Counted from the first letter of the stretch, positions 42,886 to 63,902 are shown. The stretch: 64,000 bases of DNA from Zygnema circumcarinatum SAG 698-1b (GCA_037447605.1 CM074809.1:1106689-1170688), one strand, 5' to 3'. Notes: generated from the sequence alone by a model not told the origin. A program made the numbers and translations.

Positions 42886-45800
42886 CTAGAAGCTTGTTCT
42901 GAAAAAGGCTTCGATTTCTTCAAGGCTCCGACCCCGAGTTTCGGGAACAAGAAATAACACAAACACGACAGCAATAACACTTTCGGCTGCATACAGCCAG
43001 AATGCTCCTGCAAACATATGGGATTGAAAACACACGGGAATGAATAATCGAATAGGCTTAGCCGAATGGTTGAAAGCAAAGCAAGCGCAAAAGGACGAAC
43101 TAGTACTGAGCTTATGTGAATGCAATGAGTATCTTGGCTGCTGTTCATACATCACTTGATACTTTGCCGAAGTGTACTCGCAATACACAAGCACATCTTC
43201 CTCAGGGATACTATAGGGCAATTTGTTTCAAGAAATGCCTCGTGAATCAAAGTTTGCAGCATGGATTGGTGGGCAAATAATGATGGTTTCTAGGAAGGTA
43301 AAGGTATTGAATCCGAAATATGAAATTTGCCGAGTTGCAGGTGCCCGGGGCCAAATCTGAAGCCTCTTGCAAAAACAAACTCAGAATCCCTACTTCAGGT
43401 CAAGGTGTGTTGACGCATGCACATTTCAATTTTCTGGTGGCAAGGCCTCTCTGCACGTACCAACAGAGCTCCAACTGACGAGGTAATAAAAAGTGAGAGT
43501 CACAACGAAGCTTGACAACCAGTTGGTAAGGACTGCAATACTGCCCGCCAAGCCTCTTGCATATGTTGGGAAGATCTGCAGTAACACATATAGAACCAAA
43601 CGAGTCAATCCCAATACATAGCTCTTTAAATGTCATAAGCTGTATATAGAAGGTTCTTAAATATAATGCACAAGAAGAAAGCCATGGTTACCTTCAACAC
43701 CTTCCCAATACTGAAACCAACAGGCCATGAGTCAGGTGTTCAATTTTCAGATTAAGCGCACTCACCTCAGACATGATAATCCAGGGAATTGGACCCATGC
43801 CGGTGGCGAAGGCAATTATGTACAACATCAGGCTGGCAAGAGCAAGAAAACCAGAAATCGACTTGAACGGGCTATCGTCCGGTAAATCCTGCACCTCCAT
43901 AACCACTTACACCTTTGCATCAACTCTCGTTCAAGCTCTCAATTGAACGTTCTGCAGAAATGTGGACTTTCCGTGCATCTATCCATTGTTTTGGTAAGGG
44001 TTGACAGAACGAGCTTCTCGTCCATAATATAGCCATAATAACCTAATAATTGTCTGGGCAGAGGTGGCACCTTCAGAAGGAAGGAGAGGCCGAGAGTGAA
44101 AGCTGCGGTTGCAAGACCTGACGCAGAGAGGATGAGAAGAAGTCGCCGACCTGCTTTGTCCATCAGTCCTGCTGCGACGGCTGACATCACGACCTGCATT
44201 ATAAGTACAACGTCAATAAGGGACCCCACCCTTGCTCGGACTATACAATCGATGAGCTTTCTTCAAGCAAGTAATGTATATTCCCTGTGGGGTGAGACTT
44301 CACATCCCCCACAGTAGATACACGAGGATTATAATGATCAAAACAGTAAAGCTGCACCTGGCATCAAGTTGCCGAACATAATTTGCCCTTTAAGCCATCC
44401 CCGCCCAAAGTTTGTTACTTCAGTTGAGTAATAAAGTACAAATTAGCTGAGACAGCTGTCGAAAAGAGACTCTTATATGGTCCGTCTATGGCAGCAGCGC
44501 AAAAAATGAAGGCATACCTGCACTGCTTGAAGAAAGAATCCCGGTAAATTTGGGTTTTCGAAACCGGCAGCCGCAAATATTGAGCCGGCATAAAACATGA
44601 CTGAATTTACTCCACTGAATTGCTGCAGGACCATTAGCCCCACACCAACCTGTTCCTCCCTCCCCCTTCCCACTGAGTCTCCTTGCCTCCTATGTGCCCG
44701 CAATGAGCCAGAAATTACCGACACGACGGCAGGGCAAATTGAGAATCGAAAAAAACTTAACCGTCCTTCATCGGCATTAAATCTCCAGAGACATTCTTGA
44801 CCCCCAAAACTCTGGAGTTAGCACCCATCTTAGCCCAAAAAAGCTTCAAAACACAACTCCCAGACTAAAGTTTCGCCTATTCCTGAAACTCAAGTTACAT
44901 TTAGTCCACCTCAAGAAAAGCTACAGATAGCAAAACACACCAAGAGTGGCATTCGCAGACTCCTTCCTGCAAGGTCCTTCAAGGTGGCCTGCGGCTGGGA
45001 GTCAGCTTCCTCCACAGCCGCTTGAATTTTTCGCATTTCAGGAGCGATATTTGCATTGCGCCCCCGAAGCTTGTGCAATACAACGGCAAGTTCGGCCGAA
45101 GTCGAGTGTTTGGCGACCCAACGAGGAGTTTCCGGAATGATTGTCAGACTAATCAAGAGAAGAACAGGAGGAACGATGCCTGGAAGTCGAAGACACTTAG
45201 AAGCAAATCAGATTTGCGGCAAGAGGGGCCATGATTCGTGGATTGAAGGGGGCATTGGTATTCACTTCATCGTTGCTTCACTTCAATGTGACAGGCCAAA
45301 AAGATGCTGTGCTCTGTCGGAATCAACCTTGAGGCAAACATGACATTCAGGAAGCTATTGCAACCCCAATGGCTCATTTGAAGACTTACCGGTGATGGCG
45401 AGAGAGCGCCATCCCAATACTAAGCCCAATGTGTAGACGAGAAGGATTCCAATTGTGATAGCGAGCTGGTTGAGGGCTCCCAGGCTGCCACGTAGCTCCA
45501 CGGGTGCGATCTCAGCAATGTACACTGGCACCTGCGTCAAAAAAAAAAAAAAAAAAACGAGAGTTTGTTGTCCATTGACAGTTGATCAACAATGCGTTAA
45601 TGACAGTCGGTTGATGCTTGCAAACATAGGAGTCGTCGGAATGCAGATGCCTTACAGCAAATGAAACCATGCCGGTGCCGAAACCACATAGAAACCGACC
45701 CGCGGACAGCAGCACAATTTCCTGCAACATCAAGTAATAAGCAACGAGATCATGTTCATTCGCTGCGGATACTGTAATGCACGAGACTCTCAGCAAGATG

Positions 45801-48244
45801 CAGACAATATAGACGAGATTGCAGTTCACGCTAGTTTGTAAGCATATGCTAAATGACACCAACAGCTTAACAGTTAAGAAGGCTTCAAAAAACAAGCATG
45901 AAAGTCATAACATTCCCATAGTTCAGACATAAGCCGGAGCTTGTGAAGGCAAGAAACTGGCTACCTCTGTTTCAAACCCTTAAACGTGGAGGACCTGTGG
46001 GATCTGGATATTGGTGGCCAAATAGAAAGCACAGGTCGCAGGCCTGTGTTCACTCACACTGCTGAAGGCAATTACGGCCCAACCGACTGCAAATGGAACG
46101 CCTGCCACCAACAAAGCCTTTTTGCGACCCAAACGGTCGGCAATGCTCCCTCCAGAAATAGCGCCAACCATGGCACCTACATTGACAATTGCAGAGAAGA
46201 AAGAGGCCTGCCCAGTGCTGAGATGAAGCTCATTCCGCATCTCTGACAAGGCAGGGGACGTGTACCCCAACTGCATCCCACTCCCGAAGGCATTGAAGGG
46301 CATTGAGGGGGGCTCTCTCGCGAACAAGTCTGTTGAATCTCCTATTTCCAAAACATGAGACAGGCTTGTATATACTTGCATCATGGCAAATCATCCGCCA
46401 GATCGTGTTAACAACAACACGACCATCACATCTAGAAACACTGGAAACAAACAGTTTTGATTACTTTCCAAAGTGGTGCTGGTGATTGATTTTGCTACAC
46501 AACATAGAGACTGATCTCTATGAAACGTCATGACGCATAAAATTGATTATCTGACTGAAACAGCTTGAACGGAACAACTACATCCTTTCCTAGCGCCTCT
46601 AAGAATCAGCAGCATCAAGACATTCAACGACAAATCTCTGATAAATGATTGAGAAACTGCGGTGAATAGAATCTGCTAAGGGGACGAAGAGAGCCATGCC
46701 TACCGTATATCCAAAGGCCAGGGGCCCGAAAGCCGCAAATATAGTACACAACAGAGTGAAGGACATAACGGTGGAACCCTCCTGCAAGCGGCATAACATG
46801 AAACTGTGTCAGCTATTGACTCTTTTCATAATAGATGTAATGAATCAAAGAGCAACTAACCCCGTTAAAGACACCACAACGCTTAGCTGCTGCCCTAACC
46901 TTACTTGCTTTCCAGGGTTGCCAGGTGTAACGGCCTCTGCATGGAGCTGCACGATCATACGAATCTGGTGTCAGGGCGCGCACAGACTACTTAAGTCACT
47001 TTAATCTTTACCTTCTTGTTACCAATAACATGACTTTCCCAGCAAAACCAAAACAAAGCAAGCTTGAACTGATTCTTCTTGATATCCACATCAATACGGG
47101 ACAAAAACGACATTGCTTGAGATCATGTGCTAAGCACCTATATGCCAAAGATCTTCCATTCAATTAGAAAAGTTTAGAGACATCAACAGAGTCACTTGTG
47201 AGCCTTGTTAAGTGCTATCGATAAACACCTGAGTGTGCACAATGAAATAGAGCTTCAACAACACAGACAAGCATCTAAATATATTAAACTTGTTGGGCCG
47301 GCATTTTTTCAATTTCATTTAGGAAGCGATTAAACAATAAATCAATGGATCATTTTGTAAATGGTAAACGGCGAATGAAAGTTCTATGAATGATGTTCAC
47401 AAGAATGCTGACGCAATGTGGAATAATGGGGAATGACGCTGCTTTAATTTAACACTTTCAAGAGCAACCCATACAAGTTTCTTATATTCATATTCTCGCT
47501 GCTTTCTTTCTTCAACTGCTCGGCTAAAGCCTCACCGCTTTCGAAGATCATTCAACCTCATAGGTTAACCCTCACTGGTTCTACATATTGCCTTTATCCA
47601 TGTGCATTTGATGGCGTCACCACAATATGATCAATGTCAACCTTATTCCCCTGATATGACTAGCCACTTCATACTTTGAAAACAGGTAGTTGCCAACTGG
47701 CAGAATGAACGGAATTAAAAAAAGAGCGACAGGGCTAAATAGCAGGAATAGCTTAAGAAAAACAGCTGACTACAAGAATAGCCTTCAAATTAAGGGGTAT
47801 CTTTCAGGTCATTAGAAACTTTTCGAAGAAGCACCAAGATTACGAAAAGCCTGGCTCCTCTAGAAGCAAAAAGCTAATGTGGAAAACCGGAGATGTGGTC
47901 AATACTTAAAGTAAATTCCATGCCGTACTGTACGGTGTTAGTCTCAACGAAAGTAAGAGCTCTGGAAGTTGAGCTGCAATTCAGTCACATTTTCTTGTCC
48001 ACGTCTCACTCTCTCTATCAACCTTAAACAGACAAAGCGAAACCAGCAACAGAATGTTCCTTCACCAGCTTGGCTCAATAAGAAGACGCAAAATGTGAGG
48101 GTAGAACTAAGCCAATCCTGGCTTCCATGGCTGCTGCCCGCATATGCCACATACCTGTTCCGAAGCTCCCACTTCTGAGTGCGCAGGCTCCTCATCTTCA
48201 GACAGGAGCCGACCTCTGGACCCAGCCCCTTCCGAGTCCGCCAT
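42886..48244 (-). CDS. MFS sugar porter, ERD6-like / GLUT8-like
   Basis: Exons 48155-48244 (less certain), 46704-46781, 46058-46270, 45656-45721, 45390-45531, 44941-45179, 44518-44649, 44071-44193, 43766-43888, 43461-43575, 42886-43007. Motifs [63 protein letters not shown]. Confidence 0.9.
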
Positions 48245-48434
48245 GGCTTCAGCGGTTAGGCGGAGCCGGATGCAGGGCAAGAAAGAGGCCTGCACTGCAG
48301 GCTACAAGAAAGTAATTACAACTCTTGTCCCTTTTTATTTCATTATAATTTTTTTTTTCTTTTTATCCAAGGGGAAAACCCGGCAAGCGCTTGCTGCCAC
48401 TTGGCCGCGCAAACGGTCGAGCTATCTGTAGGTT

Positions 48435-48486
48435 CTGCCACGTGGCAGTCACACATTGCCAGCAGCCAACGAGCGGCCGCCACGTG
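48435..48486. promoter_or_regulatory. Paired G-box/ABRE-like elements upstream of the sugar transporter
   Basis: Perfect 14-bp palindrome CTGCCACGTGGCAG at 48435-48448 and GCCACGTGG at ~48478-48486, about 190-240 bp upstream of the ATG. Confidence 0.5.
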
Positions 48487-48562
48487 GATTTTAGTGTCGG
48501 TGGGAGTTTGTTCGAGGCCTGGTCGGTGTCGAGCGGTTTTGGGGCCGATCCGAAGGGAGAGG

Positions 48563-48701
48563 ACCATGGGTGCCATGGGCGATGATGGGGCCATGGGCGA
48601 TGATGGGGGCTTTTAGAAAATGACCTTCCCTGCATGCCATGCCATGCCGTGTCATGCCATGGTGTTCATCGGCGACTCCATGCGACGCCTTTTGGAGAAT
48701 G
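48563..48701 (+). repeat. Short copy of the CATG-rich compound satellite also found at 54724-55720
   Basis: CCATGGGCGATGATGGGG units followed by CCTTCCCTGCATGCCATGCCATGCC..ATGGTGTTCATCGGCGACTCCATGCGACGCCTTTTGGAGAATG. These modules match 55480-55620 in the same orientation. Confidence 0.88.
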
Positions 48702-49689
48702 GACGGCGAAGATGCGTTCTGTCAAGTGGCGGGAGATGGTACGGATGATAGCTGCGGCCCGAAAAAGTAATGCCCGGAGCCATGCATGGTGCGACTCAGC
48801 GCGGGAAGGGGCCATCTCTCGCAGGCGGAGCATGCCCTTTGCTTTATGGCGGGAGCGAATTCGATCGAGCTTTACGAGAGAAAGGCTCTTGATTATAGAA
48901 AGGCTCTTGACTACGCCGAACAATGGTGAAGATTCGGTCAGTGAGAACCTAAACCCTACACCCTTACCCCTCACTCTACACCTTACACCGTACACCCTTA
49001 CCCCTGCACCCTATTCAGCCTCAACATCGTGTGTATTAGTGCCCTCTCGCCCTCTCGTACCACTCAACAGGCCTCCTCTCATCCTTGGAAACCCCTCGTC
49101 CATTTTGTTGATAATTTGAGTCCGGTCCGGTCGCACCCTCAGACATGCTTCCAAAACAGCGAATTTTCCCCCAATGCACACACCACAAAGGAAAATAAAC
49201 TCTGAAATAAATCACCGAGAAGTGAAAGAAAAAGGAAAAAGCCCCCCCAACTCAAAATCCTTAGGATTAGGATAATATTGTGACAGACAATGAAATTTGC
49301 TCGCAACCAATTTGTACTGCTCTGCCCAAAAGCTCCTTATCCTGTCGCCCATACAGCAAGCCTTTACACTCGGCACGAGAGTTCGGCCTAAGGGGCCGCC
49401 AAGGCCAGTGGGGCGTGTCCGTACAAAAACGCCCTCCCTCGCTGTGTGCAGCTTCCGCGTCCCTTCGCGCCTCCAAAAAGCAAACTAGGCTAGCTCGTGC
49501 TCACGCGCCTATCGCCGCGCGCCACGCGTCCTGTTTAGACTGGCCCTGCTCTGTTCCCAAACACGGAGGACTTGTAAACAAAAACTAAGGACCGCACATG
49601 TGGACTTTAACCTATGCCCGACTGGACACTACATCCAATTTACCTCAAATATCCTTGCACTTTAGCATATGTACACCCTCTATTGTACA

Positions 49690-50105
49690 CTATTGGCCCC
49701 TACTTGTACCCCCATCGACCCCAACACACTTCTTGAGCCACAACATGGCCTTGCTTCGCCGCCCTCTCCTACCACTCAGCAGCCCTCCTCTCATCCTCAG
49801 GAACCCCTCGTCCATAGTGGTAACACTCTCCCAACGCGTTTTTACCCTCAGCAAGGCCTTGCTCTGCTGCCCTCTTGACCCTAGAAACCCTAAAAACCCG
49901 GAAGCCCTCCCATTATCCTCAAAAACCCTTCGTCCCTTTTCGTAACACACTCCCAAATTGTATGCAGGCTCAGCAAGGCCTCGCTCCGCCGCCCTCTCGT
50001 ACCACTCAGCAGCCCTCCTATCATCCTTAGGAACCCCCCGTCCATAGTGGTAACACTCTCCCAACGCGTTATCAGCCTCAGCAGACTGCTCTGCTGCTCT
50101 CGTGA
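49690..50105 (-). pseudogene. Decayed, out-of-frame Sel1 repeats downstream of the intact array
   Basis: Sel1 text continues in shifted frames ([46 protein letters not shown]). A further unit has TAG where intact units have TAC. Confidence 0.8.
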
Positions 50106-53100
50106 CCCTAAAAACCCTAAAAGCCCTAAAACACCTGAAAACCCTAAAAACCCTAAAAACCTTAAAAACCCTAAAAACCCTTTAGCCCTCCCCTTATCCT
50201 TAGAAACCCCTCGTTCCTTTTCGTAACACACTCCCAACTTGTATGCAGCCTCAGCATGGCCTCGCTCCGCTGCCCTCGTGTACCATTCAACAGCCCTCTT
50301 ATAATCCTTAGGAACCCCTCGTCCATTGTAGTAACACTCTCCCAACGCGTATTCAGCCTCAGCATGGCCTTGCTCCGCTGCCCTCTTGTACGACTCGAAA
50401 GCCCTCCCCTTATCCTCAGAAACCCCTAGTCCCTTTTCGTAACACGCACCCAATTTGTATGCAGCCTCAGTACAGCCTTGCTCTGCCGCCTTCTCGTACC
50501 ACTCAACAAACTTGCTCGTATCCTCAAGAACCCCTCGTCCATAATGGTAACACTCACCTAACTTGTACGCAGCCGCAGCATAGCCTTGCATCGCCGCCCT
50601 CTCGTACAACTCAACAGCCCTTCTCTCATCCTGAGGAACCCCTCGTCCAAAGTAGTAACAATATCCCAACGAGAATTGAGCCTCAGCATGGCCTCGCTCC
50701 GCCGCCCTCGCGTACAACTCAACACCCCTCCTCTCATCCTTAGGAACCCCTCGTCCATTGTAGTAACACTCTCCCAACGCGTATTCAGCATCAGCATGGC
50801 CTTGCTCCGCTGCCCTCTTGTACGACTCGAAAGCCCTCCCCTTATCCTCAGAAACCCCTAGTCCCTTTTCGTAACACGCACCCAATTTGTATGCAGCCTC
50901 AGTACAGCCTTGCTCTGCCGCCTTCTCGTACCACTCAACAAACTTGCTCGTATCCTCAAGAACCCCTCGTCCATAATGGTAACACTCACCTAACTTGTAC
51001 GCAGCCGCAGCATAGCCTTGCATCGCCGCCCTCTCGTACAACTCAACAGCCCTTCTCTCATCCTGAGGAACCCCTCGTCCAAAGTAGTAACAATATCCCA
51101 ACGAGAATTGAGCCTCAGCATGGCCTCGCTCCGCCGCCCTCGCGTACAACTCAACACCCCTCCTCTCATCCTTAGGAACCCCTCGTCCATTGTAGTAACA
51201 CTCTCCCAACGCGTATTCAGCATCAGCATGGCCTTGCTCCGCTGCCCTCTTGTACGACTCGAAAGCCCTCCTTTTATCCTTAGAAACCCCTCGGCCCTTT
51301 TCGTAACACACACCCAACTTGTATTCAGCCTCAGTATGGCCTCGCTCCGCCGCTCTCTTGTACCACTCAAGAGCCCTCTTCTCATCCTTAAGAACCCCAT
51401 ATCCAAACTCGTAACACCTTCCGAGCTCGTATTCAGCCTTAGCATGGCCTTGCTCTGCCGCTTTTGTAAACATTTCCACTGCCTGTACCATGTCTTGTTT
51501 AATAAATTTGTTACTCTTCCTAAATATCTCTTCATCAACAAATACCTTGCCCAACTGAAACTGGGCTTCTGCATGTCCTTGATTTGCCGCTTTCTGAAGT
51601 AGCTCCACGGCCCGTGGAATGTCTTGAATGACTCCCAAGCCCTGCATATAACATGATGCCAACTCAGCTTGAGCGTCTTCCAAACCTGGACCGGCTGCCC
51701 TCTCCAGCAGCTCAACAGCCTTTACTAGGTCTTTTTGCACCCCATTCCCGGTCTTGAAACACAACCCTAATTTGCACTGTGCCTTCAACACACCCTTCTC
51801 TGCAGCACGTGTGTAAAGCTGAACAGCCTGTTTCATGTTCTTGAGAACTCCTCTTCCGTTCTCGTAGCACAGTCCTAACCGGAAAAGTGCTCCCAAAAGC
51901 CCCTGATTCGCCGCATTACTGTAAAAAGTCACCGCCTGGTCGAAATCCGGCAAAAATCCACGTATCCCCTCTTCACATTGTACCCCCAATTGATAGAACG
52001 AATTCCCTTGATCTTCACTTTCTACTGCCAAAGAATTTCCCTCATCCCTACTTTCAATTCTCCCAGAATTCCTTGGATCGTCGACTACATTGCCTGCCAC
52101 TTTGGAAGCAAGACTTCTAATAATCTCTTGAATGTAGTGCTCCTCCTCTGATTGCTTGTCGGATACAGCGCGCTCCATATCCGCCTTCACCTCCTCCATG
52201 AACCTTCGGATCTACACAAGAACATGCCATGCATAATGGTGAGTTGATAATTAGTGAGCGATACCTCGACATAATCCATGGCCAAAGACCAATTATGTGG
52301 CCAATTATGCGCACAAACATGACAATAATCCATGACTGCATGCAGTGCATATGGAATGTCAATCACAGTTGAATGCACGTGGAGTTCAAGATCAATTCTC
52401 TCTAAACTAAGACAACCCACCAACTCGAGACAAGTCAACCTCCACAAGAAAGAGCCCCTCCCACCTCCTGCTGCGTGATCTCCCTCTCCTTCAGAAGGCG
52501 GCTCACAAGCGCGTCCACCGACTCCGGCTTGTCCACCGCCGCCCCCCCCAACAGCGCCGCATTCTGCGCCCTCTCCTCCTCCCCCGCCCTCCACATGCGG
52601 TCCATCTCCTTCCGCTGCTCTCTCCTCTTTGCGCTCTGCTCCTCTCTACTCAACTCCCGCACCTGCAGAAAGTCCTGCTCGCACTGCAAAATGTAGAAAT
52701 GCATGTCCTTTATATCCTCAGAGATCTGTTCGTGGTAGAGCAGACGGTAAAGCTTGCTCCGCTTGCAGCGCGCGGCCAGTTCTGTGGCGGAGTGCACGTG
52801 CTGCAGCAGCTCCCCCAGGCCCTTCTCTTCCGCCCTGCGCCCCTCAAGGAGGGAGGAGAGCCGCTCCAAACGCTGGCAGAGGAGGGCGCCCATTTGGCCG
52901 TGTGACATCACGTTGTCCCACGCGCGCCGCAGGGCGACCACCGCCTGGAAAGTTGTATTCGCCGTGTCCATCTGTGGAAAGGTAGTGGTGGGGTGATGGG
53001 AATAAGAGAGGGGGAGGGGAAAAAGGGGAGGGGGGNNNNNNNNNNGGAGGGGGGAGAGGGAGTGGGAGGGGGGAGGGGGGAGAGGGAGTGGGAGGGGGGA

Positions 53101-54362
53101 GGGGCAGAGAAGAGGAGTGGGAAATAAATGGAGGAAATTGGAGAGGAGTGGGATGTAGAAAGAGAAGATAAGTGAGGGAGTGAGGGAAACAAAGATGGAG
53201 ACAGGCATGGTTACCTGGTTTTCCTTGGAAATGGCATCAGATACACCGCAACTGGACGACGCCGTTGGATCCGGTTGATTTTTGTTCTTTGCATTCTCTG
53301 CTGCCCACTGCAACCGAGGCAGAACATTGCTCTCAAGTCTCGGGCGAGCCGACCTTTCCTCCTCCACGCACTGCAGTGCCACGAGGAGGGCTGCCTCTGT
53401 TTGCTGCCGCCCCCACGCCCCTCCCCGCGGGTCCAGCCTCTCCATAAAGACAGTTGTCGCCTTCTCCAAGTCGCGCTTGGGCTGAGCTGGCCCGCAGCCC
53501 TCGAGGAGTTCATGGATTTTCTCGATCCTAGGTTCGCCCGTGAATAGTTGCAATATGATGAGGCCGAGGGCGTACACGTTGGCAGTGGCTGTGAGCAATC
53601 CCTTTTGTGCATGCTCCGGTGCGACGTACCTGTCAGGAACCACCGAAAGGTGACCTTGGGAGATGAGTCGGTCTGCCTTTTATAAAGTTGTGTATTCACT
53701 ATCAGAGCCCACGTAAACATCAACAAACTCACGGAAGATTCACGAGCGGGAGCAACCGTTAGCAGAGGATGGCGAGAAGGCGAAAGCTCAAGTGGAAACA
53801 AAGCTGATTGGGACATGACTTACCCGGGAGTGCCTTGGAAATTGTTGCGGGTTAGGATTGTTGTGCCCTCAAACACTCGAGCGAGGACCATGTCTGCCAC
53901 TTTGGAGGTGAGGTTTCCGTCCAATAGCACGTTCGCTGGCTTGAAGTCGCGGTGGATGATACCTTTCTTATGCATGAACAGAAGAGCGGTCGCCATCTCG
54001 TATGATATCCGGACGCGGTCCGCCCAACCAAGGGGGGGGTACTTGTCAGCAGGACCGCTCAGGCGGTCCTCGAGGCTCCCTCCGCTCACTAGCTCGCTCA
54101 CAAAGTAGCGCCCTTCAGGGCTCCACCCAATGAATTCCACAATGTTGGGATGGTGCAGCCCGCGTAGAGCCGCGATCTCCTTCTTGAACCCCTCCAGAGA
54201 GGCGCTTTCATGCAACCTCTTCACCACCACAGGGGTTTCGAATAGCATGCCTCTGTAGACCGACCCATCCCGTCCTTTTCCGAGCAGGTTTTTGTCGGAG
54301 AAGTTGTCGGTGATCTCCGCCATAAAGCTTTTCGGGAAAAGGAAGGTATCAGATATTGCCAT
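49890..54362 (-). CDS. Kinase / MLKL-like four-helix bundle / Sel1-repeat fusion protein (~1260 aa)
   Basis: Exons 53824-54362, 53215-53629, 52465-52971, 49890-52211 join in frame via GT-AG. Kinase: [45 protein letters not shown]. Middle domain: [30 protein letters not shown]. Then ~17 Sel1 units (A.Y.LG.CY..G.GV..D...A..WY..AAEQG). A 10-N gap lies in intron 2. Confidence 0.82.
50106..50180 (-). repeat. Telomere-like (TTTTTAGGG)n tract inside the Sel1 array
   Basis: About 8 degenerate 9-bp units (CCCTAAAAA on the + strand). A shorter 2-unit tract lies at 49879-49899. Confidence 0.85.
50304..51271. repeat. Near-perfect 432-bp tandem duplication (4 Sel1 units), ~2.2 copies
   Basis: Sequence matches itself at offset 432. 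ORFs 50459-50743 and 50891-51175 are identical. The one mismatch I spotted is 50358 vs 50790. Confidence 0.9.
53036..53045. other. Assembly gap (10 N) within a G-rich intronic tract
   Basis: Literal N run flanked by GGGGGAGAGGGAGTGGGAGGGGGG-type repeats. Confidence 0.99.
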
Positions 54363-54379
54363 TCCGGCTTCCCCTTCCG

Positions 54380-54620
54380 GTTTCCCTTTCTCTCTCTTTT
54401 TCTCTCTCTTCCTTTCTCTTTGTTTTTCCTCTCTCATTCTCTCTTTCTCTCTCTTTCTTTCTCTTTTCTTTTTCTCTCCCATTTTCTCTCTTTCTCTCTC
54501 TCTCCCTCTCCCCCTCTCCCTCTCCCTCTCCCTCTCCCTCTCCCTCTCTCTTCCTCCTCCCCTCCTCTCGCCCTGTCTCTCTCTCTCGCTCTCTCTCCCT
54601 CTCTCCGCCTTTCTCTCGCC
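54380..54620. repeat. CT/GA-rich low-complexity tract upstream of the kinase ATG
   Basis: Polypyrimidine on the + strand (GA-rich on the sense strand), similar to the GA/CT tracts just upstream of the CDC123 and MCMBP starts. Confidence 0.85.
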
Positions 54621-54723
54621 CTCTCCACTCTGTGGCCCTCCTGCTTGCGCCCCACTGCTAAAAGCCGCCGAGCGGGTCCATGTTGCCCGCCGGCAATAAC
54701 GTCGCCGGTCTCGGAAAAACTCG

Positions 54724-55720
54724 GCGACTCCATGCGACACTTTTTGAGGATGCGATTGGCCTTCATCGGCGACTCCATGCGACGCTTTTGGAGGATGCGA
54801 TTGGCCTTCATCGGCGACTTCATGCGACGCTTTTGGAGGATGCGATTGGCCTTCATCGGCGACTCCATGCGACGCTTTTGGAGGATGCGATTGGCCTTCA
54901 TCGGCGACTCCATGCGACGCTTTTGCGAGGCCTTCATGCGATTGGCCTTCATCGGCGACTCCATGCGACGCTTTTGGAGGATGCGATTGGCCTTCATCGG
55001 CGACTCCATGCGACGCTTTTGGAGGATGCGATTGGCCTTCATCGGCGACTCTATGCGACGCTTTTGGAGGATGCGATTGGCCTTCATCGGCGACTCCATG
55101 CGACGCTTTTGGAGAATGCGATTGGCCTTCCATGCATGCCATTCCATGCCATGCCATGCCATGCCATGCCATGTCCATGCCATGCCGAGCGAGTCCATGC
55201 GACGCTTTTGGAGGATGCGATTGGCCTTCATCGGCGACTCCATGCGACGCTTTTGGAGAATGCGATTGGCCTTCCATGCATGCCAGTCCATGCCATGCCA
55301 TGCCATGCCATGCCATGTCCATGCCATGCCGAGCGAGTCCATGCGACGCTTTTGGAGGATGCGATTGGCCTTCATCGGCGACTCCATGCGACGCTTTTGG
55401 AGAATGCGATTGGCCTTCCATGCATGCCATTTCATGCCATGCCATGCCATGCCATGTCCATGCCATGCCGAGCGAGTCCATGCGACGCTTTTGGAAAATA
55501 TGATTGGCCTTCCCTGCATGCCATGCCATGCCATGGTGTTCATCGGCGACCATGGCCGATGATCGAGCCATGGGCGATGATGGGGCCATGGGCGATGATG
55601 GGGCCGTGGGCGGTCATGGGGCCATGGGGGCCCATGGGCCATGATGGAGCCATGGGTGGTGATGGGGCCATGGGCGATGATGGGCCCATGTGGCCCATGT
55701 GGCCATGGCATGGACCCGCA
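54724..55720 (+). repeat. Compound minisatellite: 45-bp array, 144-bp higher-order unit and ~18-bp CCATGG-rich units
   Basis: Unit CCATGCGACGCTTTTGGAGGATGCGATTGGCCTTCATCGGCGACT starts at 54730, 54775, 54820, 54865, 54910, 54961, 55006, 55051, 55096. A 144-bp period follows (ATTGGCCTTC at 55121, 55265, 55409) with embedded (CATGC)n, then CCATGGGCGATGATGGGG-type units. Confidence 0.93.
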
Positions 55721-58725: not shown

Positions 58726-61643
58726 ATGCTTGCCAAAGACTGCTTTCTTGGAAATATTGTTCGTTTGGCGATCAGCTCATGGCCTCCCAATGTTCATATA
58801 AAACTTTTCTCGATGCTCCTGGAAAGCAGTTTGAGGCTTCATGGGCATCAGAAGCCCATAGAAGGACTATCGGAAAGAGCGGGACAACGGCTTCAGGGAG
58901 ATGCATACGGAGTCCAGACGATAGGCATGGGGGGCTCAGGAAGCTCCGGTGGGCTTCGGTGCAGGCAAATGTCAAGTGCAGGTGAGGCATTGGAGCAAGC
59001 ACGAGGGAACTCAGGATTTTCTGGGACTCTGTTGGCTTGTTGAAGGCTGCGCCTGCCAAAGTTATAGGTCTAGAGCATGTTGAGATTATCGAAGCTCATT
59101 GTCCAAAAGACTGATCTCTGCTAGTATATGATGCCTTGAATTGTCGAAGGGACGAGTAAAATGCTCCAGCTTACACTCATGCATTTGTCAAAGAAAATTC
59201 TGAAATAAAATGTTTTTTCCGTAGTCACGGTGCATTTCATGTATCCTCTTTCTTCGTTCGCAATAAAAAATCACTTTCATTTCAGGAATGGATATGTTTC
59301 CTACATGACATTTCAATACTAGCCTTCATCAATGAACATAAAATACCCATTTACAAAGACGAAGCTCGAAGACTTATTTGGATGTGTGGGGAAAGCCTGA
59401 GGCTTTTTGTAGAGCACAGAGGGGGCCTCCAAAATGCAGCTATCGCGACTTCAACAACCAGCCTGAAGCCGATGTGGACGACCCAAAAGCACTGCCGCAA
59501 TTATTGGTGTTGGGGAGAGAGGGTGAACAGCCGCCCCTTCGTGGGGCTCACCGAGTGGGCGATGTGGTGGTAGGGAAATACCGCATCATTGGAATTTTGG
59601 GTCAGGGTGGACTGGGGACTATGTATGAGGCAGTTACACCTGATGGAGAATCCGTAGCTTTGAAGGCTATGACGTTACGAGCCATGAAGGGATGGAAGGT
59701 GAGGGTCCTTCACATGCTGTAGGCCATTTCTCCATGAGTGCAGCGACTATTTGCCCCCCTCCGGTTCAAACCTTTTCGTAAACAACTGCTGTCACAATGT
59801 TTCTTGCACTTCAACTAGTGATTGCAACTTGTCAGTTTTTGTGCGGTGGTGGTCGTACAATACGAGGACTACGGTATAAACCTAGAGGGTAAAAAAGTCC
59901 GTTAACAATATGCTTGCGAAATACTTTTAGGGTTGAGTTTAGCAAGCACCAGGCAGCGAGATCGAGAAAAAGCAGTCCTAGAAACTACCTTTCAAGTATT
60001 GTCATTATGGAATGCAATCGCATCGCTTACCATACTTCTTAAGATCCATTAAGTTCTTTGAATACAACTTGGGCCGACGTCTTCTCGCTAATTGGCAGAG
60101 GTTGTAAGGACCCGAGGTCTCCTTGACAGCGCTACATCTATGTGCGAAACTTCATAAGGACCTTTCTATTTCCTATATGTTTCAAACAAACCATTAGCAA
60201 TTCGACAGAAAAACAGGGCAGCGAAGGAGGTCAAAGGAGGCTCGTGCGGAAGCTCTTTTAGTTTCCGGACTCTTTGCTTATGGAAGTTATAACTGCTTGC
60301 AGGAATTGGACCTTTTTGAAAGGGAAGCCAGAGTTCTACGCTCTCTTAAGCATTCCAACATCCCGGAATACATTGACCATTTTGAGGTCTGTCACACCAT
60401 CCATTGTAATTTGGAGATAGAGTATAATGCTGTCAGCTTTCGACTAGCAAGACATTCTCAGAACATGTAGCATTCTTTGCACACCGAGACAGATGCAATC
60501 AAGACTACCTGCTGTGTGTTGCAAGCGATTGAGAGTATTGAAACATGCTCAAGGAAATAGCTTGGAGAGAAGGGGCTAACAGCTATCTGCAGGATTTTTT
60601 TCGTGCCACAATGTGAATCCAGCTCCACATTTTGCATAGTCCTTGTCTACTGTGAATAACGACTAACTGATCATTCTATTTTGATTTGTGAAAGCAGGTC
60701 GATACAGAGACAGATAGGTGGTTTTATCTGGTGCAAAAAGTAGCCCTTGGTCGGTCGTTGGCCGATCTTGTTGCATCAGGATGGCGGGTCAGTGAAGAAG
60801 AAGTAATCAAAATTGCTCTTCAGGTAAAGTCCACAGCTTAGCTTCAACAAATGCATATGAAATGTGGTTTGATTCAAATGGATGTCTGAACCGCTGCAGC
60901 AGAATATAGTTTTAACTCGTTCCTTATTTGGCAATCCTGGCTCCTTCGCTGTTTTTCACTACGTTTCCTAATTGAAGCCTGATTGACAATATAGATAGAA
61001 GAAGAGCAGCAATACGGCTTACATATCTGAACACTGCCAAGTTTGGTTGTACAGGTCCTCGAGGTTTTGCAGTACCTTGAAAGCCTGCGCCCGCCTGTGG
61101 TCCATCGCGATATTAAGGTACATGTACTCTGCTGAACCAAATCAAAGGGGCAAAAAATGCCGTCAAAAGGTCCAATTTTCTCTGATTAACAAAACCATAT
61201 GCTTAAGTTATCCAGAAGATACATGGTTTCTGTTCTGTTTCCTTTTTTCCTTTTTGCCAGAAAGAGGTTCCCTTGGCATGTGGACAATGGTTTCTCGGAA
61301 GCTTGAGTGTGACTTGACTTGAGTCCTTTTCCTCCTTATCATCCGCAGCCGGAGAATATCATTCTGGATGAAGCAAGTGGAGCAGTGAAAGTGGTCGATT
61401 TTGGAGCCGTCCAAGAGGCTATCGCATCGACTTTTGTGGGCAGCACTGTTGTTGGGACGGTGAGATCTTGTTCTCTAACATTATCAAACTTCCACTTTTT
61501 CCTTTTCACAGAAAGGGCTGGGCATCACACTAGATTGAAGAAACTAGCTTTGGCACAACAGTTCATTTTCGATATGAGAGGTTCTAGCAAAGCAGTTAGT
61601 GGGTTTAAGGAACTAGAAATCTTCCTTTCTCTCTCTCTCTCAC

Positions 61644-61674
<31 letters not shown>

Positions 61675-63902
61675 AACTTCCCTCCCTTTTAATTTTTCTT
61701 TATCATGGTATGGGGTACAGTACGGGTATATGGCTCCCGAGCAGTTTCAGAACCGTGCTGGCCCACAGTCTGATCTCTATGCTCTTGGAGGGACCATTTT
61801 GTTCCTTCTCTCTGGACGGGCCCCCTCCTCCTTCCCGCAGGTTAGTCACCTTCTAGTCATGCTTTGGCTCGTGAAAAGTTGGTCTGTGTCATGAGTATGT
61901 ATGTATGTTCGAATTTTGTGAGTGTGATAGGCTCTTATCTTTACGACCCACTTGTTGATACATATCAGCCTGGAAATTTTCGAGGTTGACGAGTGCCAAA
62001 CGAGATTTTTACAGTTCTATTATCGTAGGGAAAGTTAAAGTAAGGACCTCTACGATTTTTTTGCTAAGGCTTCCATTGTGGCCGGGCTTGTGCAGAAAAG
62101 GTTGAAATTAGATTTCCGTGGCAGTGTGAGGATGAGCCAACCATTGGCATCAGCACTGGAACGCCTTCTGGAGCCAATCATTGAGGACCGTTTCCAGGTA
62201 TTCAGTACTGTAGTTGCTGCTCCTAATCTGCTTCACTCCCCTCCCAAGTATTGGGCTTTCTCTTGCTTTGCAAAGCCATTCCAGATTAAATTTATGTGCT
62301 ACCCCCATTTCTCGACAGCACCTCAGCTCTTCCAAAATTTTGCTCCTTATACCTCATTTTTTTTTCTCATCTACGCTCATACTTGTGTGGGTGACAGTCA
62401 GCAGCACAGGCAACGGAGGCTCTCAAAGAAATACTTGTTGGCAAAATTGCCGGTGGTGAAGTTCAGAGAAGTGAGCCCATATTTGAACTCGGTCGAGTAA
62501 AGCGACCGACGGGAACAAAAGTGGTGAGAACTGCAGGCATTAATGTATTTGTTAACTTCGCCCTGTCTTCTTGCACATGGACTTTAGCCGTTGACTGAAA
62601 CCACTCAGTCAGTTTATGGTTCAGATGATGGAGAAGAACAATGCGGAGCTGCTTATCAGCATTCCTCCACGAGGACTCACAGCGGAGACTGTAGGAAGTG
62701 GGACATTTGCAGTGGTGGGTTGGCCCTCTTGCCAGTCAGTAAATATGCTAATGTCCTAAAAAACCAAAATTCCCCTTCCACTCACTGCATGTGTTTCCCA
62801 TAGCAGATACTTAGTGCTGAACTTCTTTCTTAAACAACCCCAATAAGCTGTCCACTGGATGCAGGCATTCTCTCTGATTCGACCACAGTTGAGCCTTTGA
62901 GATTGATTGTTTTGCATCTTGTGCTGTTTGATGTTCAGGCATGGACTTCATTTGTTGGGTTTTGGACCGCTAGTGCTTTCACTGCGGGAGCTCCGCTTCT
63001 CTTCACTGCTTTCTCAATCCCGTTTTGGGCTGTGGGTGGCGGGTACAAAGCCTTACCTTCTTTGCTTGTTCTGAATTTAGACACTCCATTGAAGCCTGTG
63101 CATGAAAGATAAACTTCGTCTATACACATAAGCTTTGGGTTTCATTCGTTAGGGCAACACAGCTCACACTACTGCATTTGGGAAATGACATGCGGGCAAT
63201 TTTTCTTGACTATGATAGCCAATGGTAAGATTTGATTCTAGTTCGAACTGCGGTCTTCTCCTGACTATGCCACGTTACCAATTGCAGATTACTTCGTCAG
63301 GTTGTAAGCAATATAGCTGTTTCGGTTGACATGCGGATTGAAAAGAACGGCCGGTTCAGCATCGACTGGCATCTCGGAAGTATTTGGAAGCACAGGGTGG
63401 AGGGGCGAACCAGTGACATCAGCAGTGTACGCGTACTATCGACCGGGGTATTCCTCTCTCTCTCTCTCACTCCCTTACCATTTCGTTCTGTTGCAGATAG
63501 ATGTGGTGGGATTCCATTCTTTTTGCCGAATGCCGGATGTGCTGCATCTGTTTTAAAAACGTTCTTGACCTCCACTTCCTCTCGTTCGCAGTGATTCCTC
63601 CGTCTGCTTCGTTCCCCTCCATCCTGTGGTCTCTGCCTCTCCATAGCCTCCTCTTTTCTGTTTTCATCAGTTTCTCGTATGTGATGTTTGCTTCTTCTCT
63701 ATGGCTGTCTCCACAGACGGAGAATGGGCGACCCATCACTGTATGCGAGGTCCTTGAGGGCGTGCGCAGTCACTTATTTGGAGGAGGACTGCTCCTTGTT
63801 GAAGAGGAGTGGCTTGTCAGTGAACTCGCCGCCTTCCTCGGTTTACCTTTCGAGCCCTTCACTCCTCCAAGGATCGTGCGTTCGTCTATGGATGATTGGT
63901 GA
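58726..63902 (+). CDS. Ser/Thr protein kinase of cyanobacterial (Pkn2-like) type with C-terminal membrane region
   Basis: Start and first exon are uncertain. Supported exons: ~59413-59698, 60303-60386, 60698-60823, 61055-61117, 61349-61459, 61721-61840, 62096-62197, 62398-62523, 62625-62714, 62939-63042, 63288-~63447, 63717-63902. Motifs LGQGGLG, VALK, ELDLFEREARVL, VHRDIKPEN, VVDFGAVQ, GSTVVGTYGYMAPEQ, SDLYALG. Hydrophobic segment AWTSFVGFWT..FSIPFWAVG. Confidence 0.85.

Follow-up and report, generated by a model that had tools for sequence, protein, structure and literature searches.

The MCAfunc domain is specific to streptophytes and forms the N-terminal part of U-box ligases of the PUB13 and PUB45 types, where it is not described as a death domain; its oldest partners are the U-box and Arm repeats, already found in Klebsormidium and Chara (PMC8049495). 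In PUB33/PUB51-type ligases (P0122 and P0125 among the relatives compared here), a U-box follows ~30 aa after a kinase domain. In MLKL, a single polypeptide combines a helical bundle with a kinase fold, the bundle preceding a pseudokinase, and NLR/STAND receptors possess a central NB-ARC or NACHT domain. Finally, proteins that begin with a kinase and end in a long Sel1 array are present in Glomeromycotina, chytrids, Porphyridium and uncultured organisms, and the Sel1-bearing kinase proteins of Glomeromycotina have been described as MLKL-family homologues (PMC8778642). The order kinase, helical bundle and Sel1 array, lacking both U-box and NB domain, which we propose for the gene described below, was not found in the searched databases or literature.

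The window, i.e. the whole stretch of 64,000 nucleotides that was analysed, comes from Zygnema circumcarinatum SAG 698-1b (GCA_037447605.1 CM074809.1:1106689-1170688). It contains a minus-strand gene (54362-49890) of four exons, which were spliced by script into 3783 nt encoding 1260 aa and a stop codon (Table 1). This translation agrees with the original prediction of a single in-frame protein of ~1260 aa, and every peptide quoted there is present in it. All three introns are bounded by GT..AG when read on the minus strand. On the protein, the kinase is followed by a helical exon of 169 aa and by 16-17 Sel1 repeats encoded in one 2.3-kb exon; the ~17 repeats initially reported for this exon were recovered as 16 stretches by Pfam and as 17 units by eye. 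No transmembrane or signal sequence was found in the 1260-aa protein. Unlike in NLR/STAND receptors, no Pfam match to an NB-ARC or NACHT NTPase was obtained in any exon, and PADLOC returned generic kinase and repeat matches only. The position of the start codon is provisional: contigs extend beyond 54367 in the 5' direction by at least 112-146 nt, entering a repeat-masked zone, and use of the in-frame ATG at 54482 would lengthen the N-terminus by 40 K/R/E-rich residues. An assembly gap (Ns, 53036-53045) is situated inside intron 2, as are TRF arrays at 53046-53122. Since exon 2 is joined exactly to exon 3 in the contigs, the gap leaves the coding sequence untouched; it hides no exon, and the junction is of phase 0 at any true gap length.

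Table 1. Features of the gene and of its 3' region; positions are counted from the first nucleotide of the window
Feature	Position	Strand	Description
Exon 1	53824..54362	-	N-terminus and kinase subdomains I-VIII; Pfam Pkinase 1e-24
Intron 1	53630..53823	-	GT..AG, 194 nt, phase 2
Exon 2	53215..53629	-	kinase C-lobe (YVAPE, LDPRGGAW) and short Ser-rich tail; weak Pfam Pkinase C-terminal match
Intron 2	52972..53214	-	GT..AG, 243 nt as assembled, phase 0; CT-rich low complexity
Exon 3	52465..52971	-	169 aa, helical
Helical segment, first 112 aa of exon 3	52636..52971	-	four long helices and one short helix predicted
Charged tail, last 57 aa of exon 3	52465..52635	-	helix 4 continuation (coiled-coil or 'brace'-like) and one further helix
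Intron 3	52212..52464	-	GT..AG, 253 nt, phase 0
Exon 4	49890..52211	-	linker, Sel1 array, decayed 3' end
Exon 4 start	52005..52211	-	acidic, partly helical linker of ~70 aa; pI 4.6; no Pfam domain
In-frame Sel1 array	50182..52004	-	~17 units of 36 aa; Pfam Sel1 (PF08238) 1e-167, 16 stretches
Recent in-frame 432-bp tandem duplication	50359..51271	-	four Sel1 units; TRF period 432, 2.6 copies
Telomere-like (TTTTTAGGG)x8 insert	50105..50181	-	G-strand in sense orientation; TRF period 9
Decaying out-of-frame Sel1 units	49690..50104	-	from sequence and ORFs; second telomere-like insert at ~49877-49899
Isolated Sel1 fragment	49039..49124	-	tblastn; transcribed, as 3' UTR or remnant

Expression of the gene was assessed from contigs of runs X2, X3 and X4. 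The type of these runs is not recorded, but they behave as RNA, because their contigs lack introns 1 and 2. The joint that removes intron 1 (53629/53824) was present in X2 and X4 contigs, and one X3 contig (53470-53931) kept this intron. The intron 2 joint (53215/52971) was found in X2 and X3 contigs with 186-226 matching letters per side and no mismatches. Read depth was 0 inside intron 2 and about 0-2 inside intron 3. Contigs also covered 54017-54367 in exon 1 as well as 50353-50755 and 51827-52025 in the Sel1 array, in all cases with 0 mismatches. As for intron 3, its junction was represented by a single X2 contig of the same junction length and frame; three of the five junction letters differ, and the contig was therefore assigned to a close variant or paralogue. 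A close expressed variant copy can be told apart by 13 listed sites, which fall in 12 codons; the amino acid is changed in 10 of these codons. As to the proposed check of the gene model by junction reads across all three introns, contig joints were found for introns 1 and 2, while splicing of intron 3 was seen only in the variant-copy transcript. The gene is transcribed, and its kinase and helical exons are joined in transcripts; the helical exon is joined to the Sel1 exon according to the gene model and the variant transcript.

On sequence grounds, the N-terminal domain is classified as an RD-type Ser/Thr kinase of the RLK/Pelle/IRAK group, nearest to PUB33/PUB51-type kinases. Exon 1 contains the Gly-loop GKGRDGSV and the VVVK lysine and ends in GTPG, and alignment revealed C-lobe signatures in exon 2 that are common to PUB-type kinases. 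Almost all of the best database matches were angiosperm 'U-box domain-containing protein 33/51-like' sequences (40-44% identity over exon 1; 143-168 bits for the whole kinase domain), in line with the U-box-kinase type supposed from the outset. The best PDB sequence matches were IRAK1, a LysM-RLK and IRAK4, with CERK1 and BAK1 also represented. The catalytic Lys, HRD and metal-binding Asp are retained, and the DFG/DVG position reads DMV, its glycine having been lost. In the alignment with PUB-type kinases, the activation loop is shortened and an insertion of 11 aa is present; given these deviations, the kinase may be weak or inactive.

The kinase and its family signatures are thus common to this gene and to PUB33/PUB51-type ligases, but the U-box of the latter is missing: no match to PF04564 was detected in any exon, nor in two ORFs (in two frames) overlapping most of intron 3. 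The gene also differs from these ligases in that it begins at the kinase and continues with the helical exon and Sel1 repeats, and in having DMV as its DxG motif. Among the relatives, P0143, which has no U-box, contains a USP domain, and P0125 gave an N-terminal USP match that was weak and below threshold. Kinase-Sel1 proteins, which the original prediction had mentioned for Glomeromycotina, were indeed common in the database search, as also expected from the literature cited above. They share the order of N-terminal kinase and C-terminal array with the Zygnema gene, and their Sel1 repeats are 35-50% identical to its own. However, their kinases are distant (30-75 bits), and their linkers of 60-160 aa bear no similarity to the helical exon. 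The common kinase-Sel1 architecture of this gene and the fungal and protist proteins is, judging from these comparisons, probably convergent.

To explain this combination of features, we propose, at about an even chance, that the gene encodes an expressed, lineage-specific, U-box-less cytoplasmic kinase scaffold, and that it is one member of a family in which kinase, helical bundle, U-box and Sel1 domains have been shuffled. In such a protein, the Sel1 solenoid would recruit another protein, self-association or docking would depend on the helical bundle with its coiled coil, and the kinase would act on itself or on the recruited protein. The role of the whole would be that of a kinase scaffold or, in relation to putative paralogues that carry a U-box, that of a regulator or decoy lacking this domain, and not that of an executioner forming pores.

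The Sel1 array, in which TRF detected a period of 108 with 11.8 copies, is in flux: the segment 50359-50839 is exactly identical over 481 bp to the copy at +432, pointing to a very recent exact duplication of 432 bp. At its 3' end, the telomere-like insert at 50105..50181 shifts the Sel1 frame and is translated as GFLGFL.... A hypothetical GT..AG intron of 71 nt (50178-50108) would bring the frame back; contigs break at the repeat. The stop codon of the model (49892-49890) is located within the second telomere-like insert, through which an X3 contig (49809-50068) runs unspliced. As the last ~105 aa of the model are not Sel1, consisting of 27 aa encoded by the (TTTTTAGGG)n repeat followed by out-of-frame Sel1, the 3' end is decaying. 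Further downstream, contigs are unbroken from 50068 to below 48900.

The decayed 3' end, together with a close expressed variant distinguished mostly by amino-acid changes, fits a loss of constraint and counts against a functional kinase scaffold. The gene might instead be a paralogue that is still transcribed but decaying towards a pseudogene, one which has lost its U-box, has been disrupted by telomere-like inserts and a frameshift, and has no selected function. Besides the two inserts, the out-of-frame Sel1 units and the stop codon within an insert, this would account for DMV in place of DFG, for the absent U-box, for the altered amino acids in most of the codons differing from the variant, and for the contig with intron 1 retained. 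On the other hand, the four exons, whose GT..AG sites are intact, contain ~1155 aa of sensible, stop-free coding sequence; splicing of introns 1 and 2 is accurate, and the recent duplication keeps the frame. Moreover, only the extreme 3' end is damaged, a part in which truncation of repeat arrays is often tolerated. We consider an emerging pseudogene unlikely.

The nature of the helical exon bears on the remaining explanations. Its AF2 secondary structure comprises helices at residues 3-21, 27-44, 51-71, 74-80 and from 85 onwards, the last being a long helix (85-141; pLDDT 80-94 over residues 111-140) followed by another at 152-164. The short helix before helix 4 and the long helix following it fit the pattern of the MLKL N-terminal domain. 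Two single-sequence AlphaFold models reached pLDDT of 57 and 53, too low for fold comparison. No sequence relative of the exon was found among 1.84 billion protein representatives, in Pfam, among PDB sequences or in a word-index search. In particular, Pfam hmmscan to E=10 gave no match to MLKL_N (PF22215), RPW8, MCAfunc (PF19584), PF25055 or PF25368, and phmmer against all PDB chains gave no MLKL at E<=10. In the Atlas protein-language-model feature search, the top named clusters were exclusively of MCAfunc/MLKL_N/DUF7792/RPW8/PUB10_N type. For the whole exon and residues 1-112 taken together, scores were 0.91-0.92 with 178-187 shared features, residues 1-112 accounting for 0.92 and 178-184 of these ranges, a level to be read against the 4-10% of shuffled sequences that also produce matches at 0.92. 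None of these clusters was returned for the corresponding linker of a Rhizophagus kinase-Sel1 protein, used as a control.

The best feature-level match of the exon was to MCAfunc-type domains (PUB13/PUB45 ligases, MCA channels, ARO/ARIA; PF19584, PF25055, PF25368), with similarity to MLKL_N and RPW8 clusters of the MLKL/RPW8/HeLo group as well. From these model-based features, we infer a very divergent four-helix bundle of the streptophyte MCAfunc/MLKL_N/DUF7792/RPW8 group, followed by a coiled-coil extension. In the oldest arrangement of the MCAfunc group, the helical domain is combined with a U-box and Arm repeats (PMC8049495), whereas the putative bundle here is internal, placed after a kinase, with no U-box and with Sel1 repeats. 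For the MLKL-like bundle originally suggested, feature similarity and helix pattern are favourable, but the by-eye alignment lacks statistical backing and is accompanied by no Pfam or PDB match. An orthologue of the helical exon was found nowhere in the databases searched, and the gene is not a conserved single-copy housekeeping gene, a case that would have told against the original idea.

Alternatively, the helical exon could be a mere lineage-specific coiled-coil or helical spacer between kinase and Sel1 repeats, forming no discrete bundle. This would be consistent with the failure of every sequence method to yield a homologue or family match, with helices that AF2 did not pack with confidence, and with the unannotated linkers of 100-160 aa in other kinase-Sel1 proteins of fungi and protists. 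Nevertheless, the feature matches were consistent and specific: the complete exon and its first 112 aa each gave them, and the fungal linker did not. Furthermore, four helices of 17-23 residues with short loops resemble a bundle and not a continuous coiled coil, and the segment occupies its own phase-0 exon, as expected of a shuffled module. A simple spacer is in our opinion distinctly improbable.

Quite improbable, too, is the idea from which the analysis started, namely an immune or cell-death receptor free of NB-ARC, in which a ligand would be sensed by the Sel1 repeats, signalling would fall to the kinase, and an MLKL/RPW8/HeLo-like bundle would be set free to permeabilise membranes. Apart from the features shared with MLKL_N/RPW8/MCAfunc clusters, such a role is favoured by the membrane action known in this fold group, for example of MLKL and RPW8-type CC domains. 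Another member of the group, MCA, mediates calcium influx (PMC8049495). Repeats of high internal similarity, the exact 432-bp duplication and a satellite-rich setting are typical of fast-evolving recognition genes, and differences from the variant copy that mostly change amino acids would also fit. However, MLKL, RPW8 and HeLo were matched neither in sequence nor in structure, the AF2 models being of low confidence. The putative bundle lies between two large domains, unlike known executioner bundles with their N-terminal position. The domain order is opposite to that of MLKL, and the kinase, which keeps its catalytic residues and is no MLKL-style pseudokinase, is of a type that points to PUB ligases. 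The helical domain is also hydrophilic (GRAVY -0.5, pI 6.2) and lacks segments that are hydrophobic or strongly basic, and its best clusters include MCAfunc. The combination of executioner and sensor was thus not borne out.

A broader version, in which this gene and its paralogues constitute an NB-ARC-free modular surveillance system of the streptophyte lineage, with Sel1 arrays that grow by unit duplication and recognise ligands, a PUB-type kinase (with a U-box in the paralogues) that signals, and a divergent MLKL/RPW8/MCAfunc-class bundle that acts on membranes or calcium flux, is very improbable; if true, the sensor-signal-executioner logic known from NLRs and MLKL would have been invented here independently.

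Each part of the protein is of a known kind, i.e. a PUB-type kinase, a probable bundle of MCAfunc/MLKL_N class and Sel1 repeats. Even as a mere decaying copy, the gene would show how a repeat array is eroded by telomere-like repeats. If, in contrast, the helical exon truly belongs to the MCAfunc/MLKL_N class, a streptophyte-specific module would have been recombined with kinases and various repeat solenoids outside land plants. The family, with members that have or lack the U-box and have or lack the kinase, would then provide a natural series bearing on the role of the bundle, whether in docking, oligomerisation or membrane action.

Reading the minus strand over 52100-54500 and 48400-50400 placed the four exons of the gene as listed below, with canonical GT..AG borders at all introns. 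When joined by scripted splicing, the exons gave 3783 nt, i.e. 1260 amino acids and a stop, and all peptides quoted in the original prediction were found in this translation. That the four exons make one protein was examined with assembled contigs from four runs of the same organism (library type unrecorded): introns 1 and 2 are spliced as predicted, but the intron 3 junction occurs only in a contig of a variant copy.

Features of the gene and of the telomere-like sequences at its 3' end
Feature	Window positions	Strand	Remarks
Exon 1	54362-53824	-	minus-strand reading of 52100-54500
Exon 2	53629-53215	-	minus-strand reading of 52100-54500
Intron 2	53214-52972	-	CT-rich; holds assembly-gap Ns 53036-53045
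Exon 3 (helical exon)	52971-52465	-	minus-strand reading of 52100-54500
Exon 4 (Sel1)	52211-49890	-	minus-strand readings of 52100-54500 and 48400-50400
First telomere-like (TTTTTAGGG)x8 array	50105-50181		G-strand in the gene's sense; after last good Sel1 unit
Second short telomere-like insert	~49877-49899		G-strand in the gene's sense; supplies the model's stop 49892-49890

The intron 1 junction was seen in contigs of runs X2 and X4. Contig depth within intron 2 is zero, and 53215 is joined straight to 52971, with 0 mismatches, in a 418-nt contig of X2 and a 378-nt contig of X3. From this, it follows that the exons flanking the assembly gap are contiguous in mRNA and that the gap hides no exon; their junction is phase 0 whatever the true gap length, and the gap is harmless to the gene. 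The kinase-to-helical join is proven for the exact copy, and one mRNA encodes both the kinase and the helical exon. A 402-aa ORF running through intron 2 was rejected as an accident of low-complexity sequence. One X3 contig (53470-53931) retained intron 1, which would stop translation just beyond the exon; this contig could stem from pre-mRNA, from an isoform that keeps the intron or from carried-over DNA.

At intron 3, contig depth is about zero, and the sole junction contig (X2) has the modelled junction length and frame. Because three of its five junction letters differ from the genome and it reads Q-E-V-E-R-F-M, as against genomic Q-E-I-R-R-F-M, this contig was assigned to a close variant or a paralogue. 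For the link between the helical and Sel1 exons, the basis is the gene model together with the lack of coverage over the intron and the transcript of this near-identical copy. The helical exon opens with an ATG exactly at its acceptor (52971), making a kinase-less helical and Sel1 isoform from an internal promoter conceivable, but there are no reads that start in intron 2.

The kinase had been predicted to be of the U-box-kinase type, and this is upheld by its best matches. Exon 1 was recognized by Pfam as Pkinase (1e-24), and exon 2 as a weak match to the kinase C-lobe. Among PDB sequences, the top matches of the kinase were IRAK1, LysM-RLKs, IRAK4, CERK1, Pto, BAK1 and BRI1. For the protein database search, exon 1 was placed inside a longer stop-free reference, which allowed full-length proteins to qualify; it matched almost only angiosperm kinase and U-box proteins annotated as 'U-box domain-containing protein 33/51-like', at 40-44% identity. 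The whole kinase domain scored 143-168 bits against these proteins, and the alignment revealed common family signatures as far as the C-lobe. In both U-box-bearing relatives scanned (n=2), the U-box lies about 30 residues after the kinase. Here, Pfam detected no U-box in any exon or in two ORFs overlapping most of intron 3 in two reading frames, and a U-box relic was also absent from the start of exon 4. The kinase keeps the catalytic Lys, HRD, Asn and metal-binding Asp, and deviates by DMV in place of DFG/DVG, a short activation loop and an 11-aa C-lobe insertion. Judged from these residues, kinase activity is plausible but uncertain.

The Sel1 part agreed with expectation: of the roughly 17 repeats predicted in a single 2.3-kb exon, Pfam reported 16 stretches (1e-167) and 17 units were counted by eye. 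Four units are tandemly duplicated in frame (432 bp, 50359-51271), with exact identity over 481 bp. Either this duplication arose extremely recently or it is an expansion made by the assembly; contigs map equally to both copies. The array is transcribed, grows by unit duplication and erodes at its end. The predicted contrast between this long exon and intron-dense neighbours agrees with the downstream neighbour (43000-46400, minus strand), which is split among many short ORFs and looks like an intron-rich MFS sugar transporter (PETPRW motif). On the plus strand, 59378-62000 looks like an unrelated protein kinase; neither neighbour belongs to the gene's family.

With kinase and Sel1 repeats confirmed, the helical bundle is the one predicted domain that could be identified only tentatively. 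Its likening by eye to the MLKL N-terminal domain found no statistical support, as sequence methods yielded no homologue: the helical exon had no match at E<=0.001 among 1.84 billion representatives (phmmer), none at E<=10 in a word-index search, no credible Pfam family up to E=10, no PDB chain and hence no solved MLKL entry, and nothing in NCBIfam or PADLOC. A Pfam match to T2SSL (0.006) was regarded as noise. Since no homologues could be gathered, AlphaFold was run without an alignment, on 169 and 124 aa, giving pLDDT of 57 and 53. Foldseek (PDB, AFDB Swiss-Prot) and Atlas shape searches with these low-pLDDT models gave nothing beyond weak matches of a generic helical kind and were disregarded. 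The helices predicted by the single-sequence models were reproducible, at residues 3-21, 27-44, 51-71, 74-80 (short), 85 to about 141 (very long) and 152-164. By language-model features, the top named clusters were exclusively the helical-domain families MCAfunc, MLKL_N, DUF7792, RPW8 and PUB10_N (Streptophyta, Oomycota), both with the whole exon as query and with its residues 1-112 by themselves (0.91-0.92, 178-187 shared features). A control query, the corresponding linker from a kinase-Sel1 protein of Rhizophagus clarus, gave no such cluster matches. On the calibration supplied with the feature search, we regard this link to the bundle clusters as a lead of moderate strength rather than proof.

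The MCAfunc domain, which occurs in PUB13 and PUB45 (both ubiquitin ligases), is specific to streptophytes, and its oldest partner set, U-box and Arm, is already found in Klebsormidium and Chara (PMC8049495). Given this ancestry and the PUB-type kinase, the most economical reading is a shuffled PUB-like family with Sel1 in place of Arm and a kinase attached, of which our gene would be a U-box-less member. The search with the Sel1 exon also retrieved many proteins of Rhizophagus, chytrids, Mortierella relatives, Porphyridium and uncultured organisms which, like this gene, have an N-terminal kinase and C-terminal Sel1; those of Glomeromycotina have been called MLKL-family homologues with Sel1 (PMC8778642). 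The kinases of these proteins bear only a distant relation to the present one, and their linkers have neither similarity to the helical exon nor a recognizable domain in common with it. The common architecture looks convergent.

A live alternative is that the gene is a decaying paralogue, and the missing U-box and the DMV motif would fit this, as would its relation to close copies. Variant contigs and genome disagree at 13 listed sites, which fall in 12 codons; the amino acid is changed in 10 of these, and differences from the close copy are mostly non-synonymous. One X4 variant contig is 96.5% identical over exon 1. Transcription of at least one close paralogue or allele is evident from expressed contigs 95-97% identical to the gene (at 51641-51763, 52548-52629 and 54047-54090), some of them much deeper than those of the exact copy. 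No paralogue was found by tblastn within the 64-kb window, and the gene's own protein and its paralogues were absent from the searched protein collections.

The telomere-like inserts also favour decay. In frame, the first TTTTTAGGG array is translated as GFLGFL..., a hydrophobic Gly/Phe/Leu-rich stretch of 27 aa, beyond which the Sel1 units no longer follow the reading frame. They would be brought back in frame by a hypothetical GT..AG intron of 71 nt (50178-50108); contigs break at the repeat there. The second insert was rejected as an intron, being too short at 17 nt and read through unspliced by an X3 contig. With or without the 71-nt intron, the last ~60-105 residues are junk, the end of a decaying array. 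The two TTTTTAGGG arrays occupy the same position in two successive Sel1 units. Contig depth at the first array reaches 1500-2400, indicating a repeat carried by many transcripts of the organism. What speaks against decay of the whole gene is that splicing is accurate and that the coding sequence is intact over about 1155 aa.

Transcribed sequence extends past the array to below 48900. At the 5' end, contigs run upstream past 54367 by at least 112-146 nt and enter a masked GA-rich zone. Translation may start at 54362 or at an in-frame ATG at 54482, which could lengthen the protein by 40 K/R/E-rich residues. An apparent transcript 'cut' at 54367 beside an AG was rejected as a sign of an upstream exon, 54368-54610 being masked as repeat. 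This flank also holds a 240-bp GA/CT-rich array (54386-54625), and both flanks (48561-48701; 54721-55720) have satellite families in common, namely an 18-mer of ATGGGGCCATGGGCGATG type, CCATG runs and a 45-mer within a 144-bp compound unit, on the same strand with block order swapped.

An immune or cell-death function of the gene is speculation. An executioner role for an MLKL-like bundle as effector of cell death is conceivable but has several points against it: the bundle lies inside the protein, it follows the kinase, opposite to the order in MLKL, the kinase retains catalytic residues a pseudokinase would lack, the helical domain is hydrophilic and near-neutral, and fold evidence is absent. 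For a shuffled PUB-like protein, we can propose that the Sel1 solenoid would bind a partner protein, that docking or oligomerisation would fall to the bundle and coiled coil, and that the kinase would modify itself or the partner. The gene is of value mainly for its place in a natural series of shuffled domains around a helical-bundle module of streptophytes.
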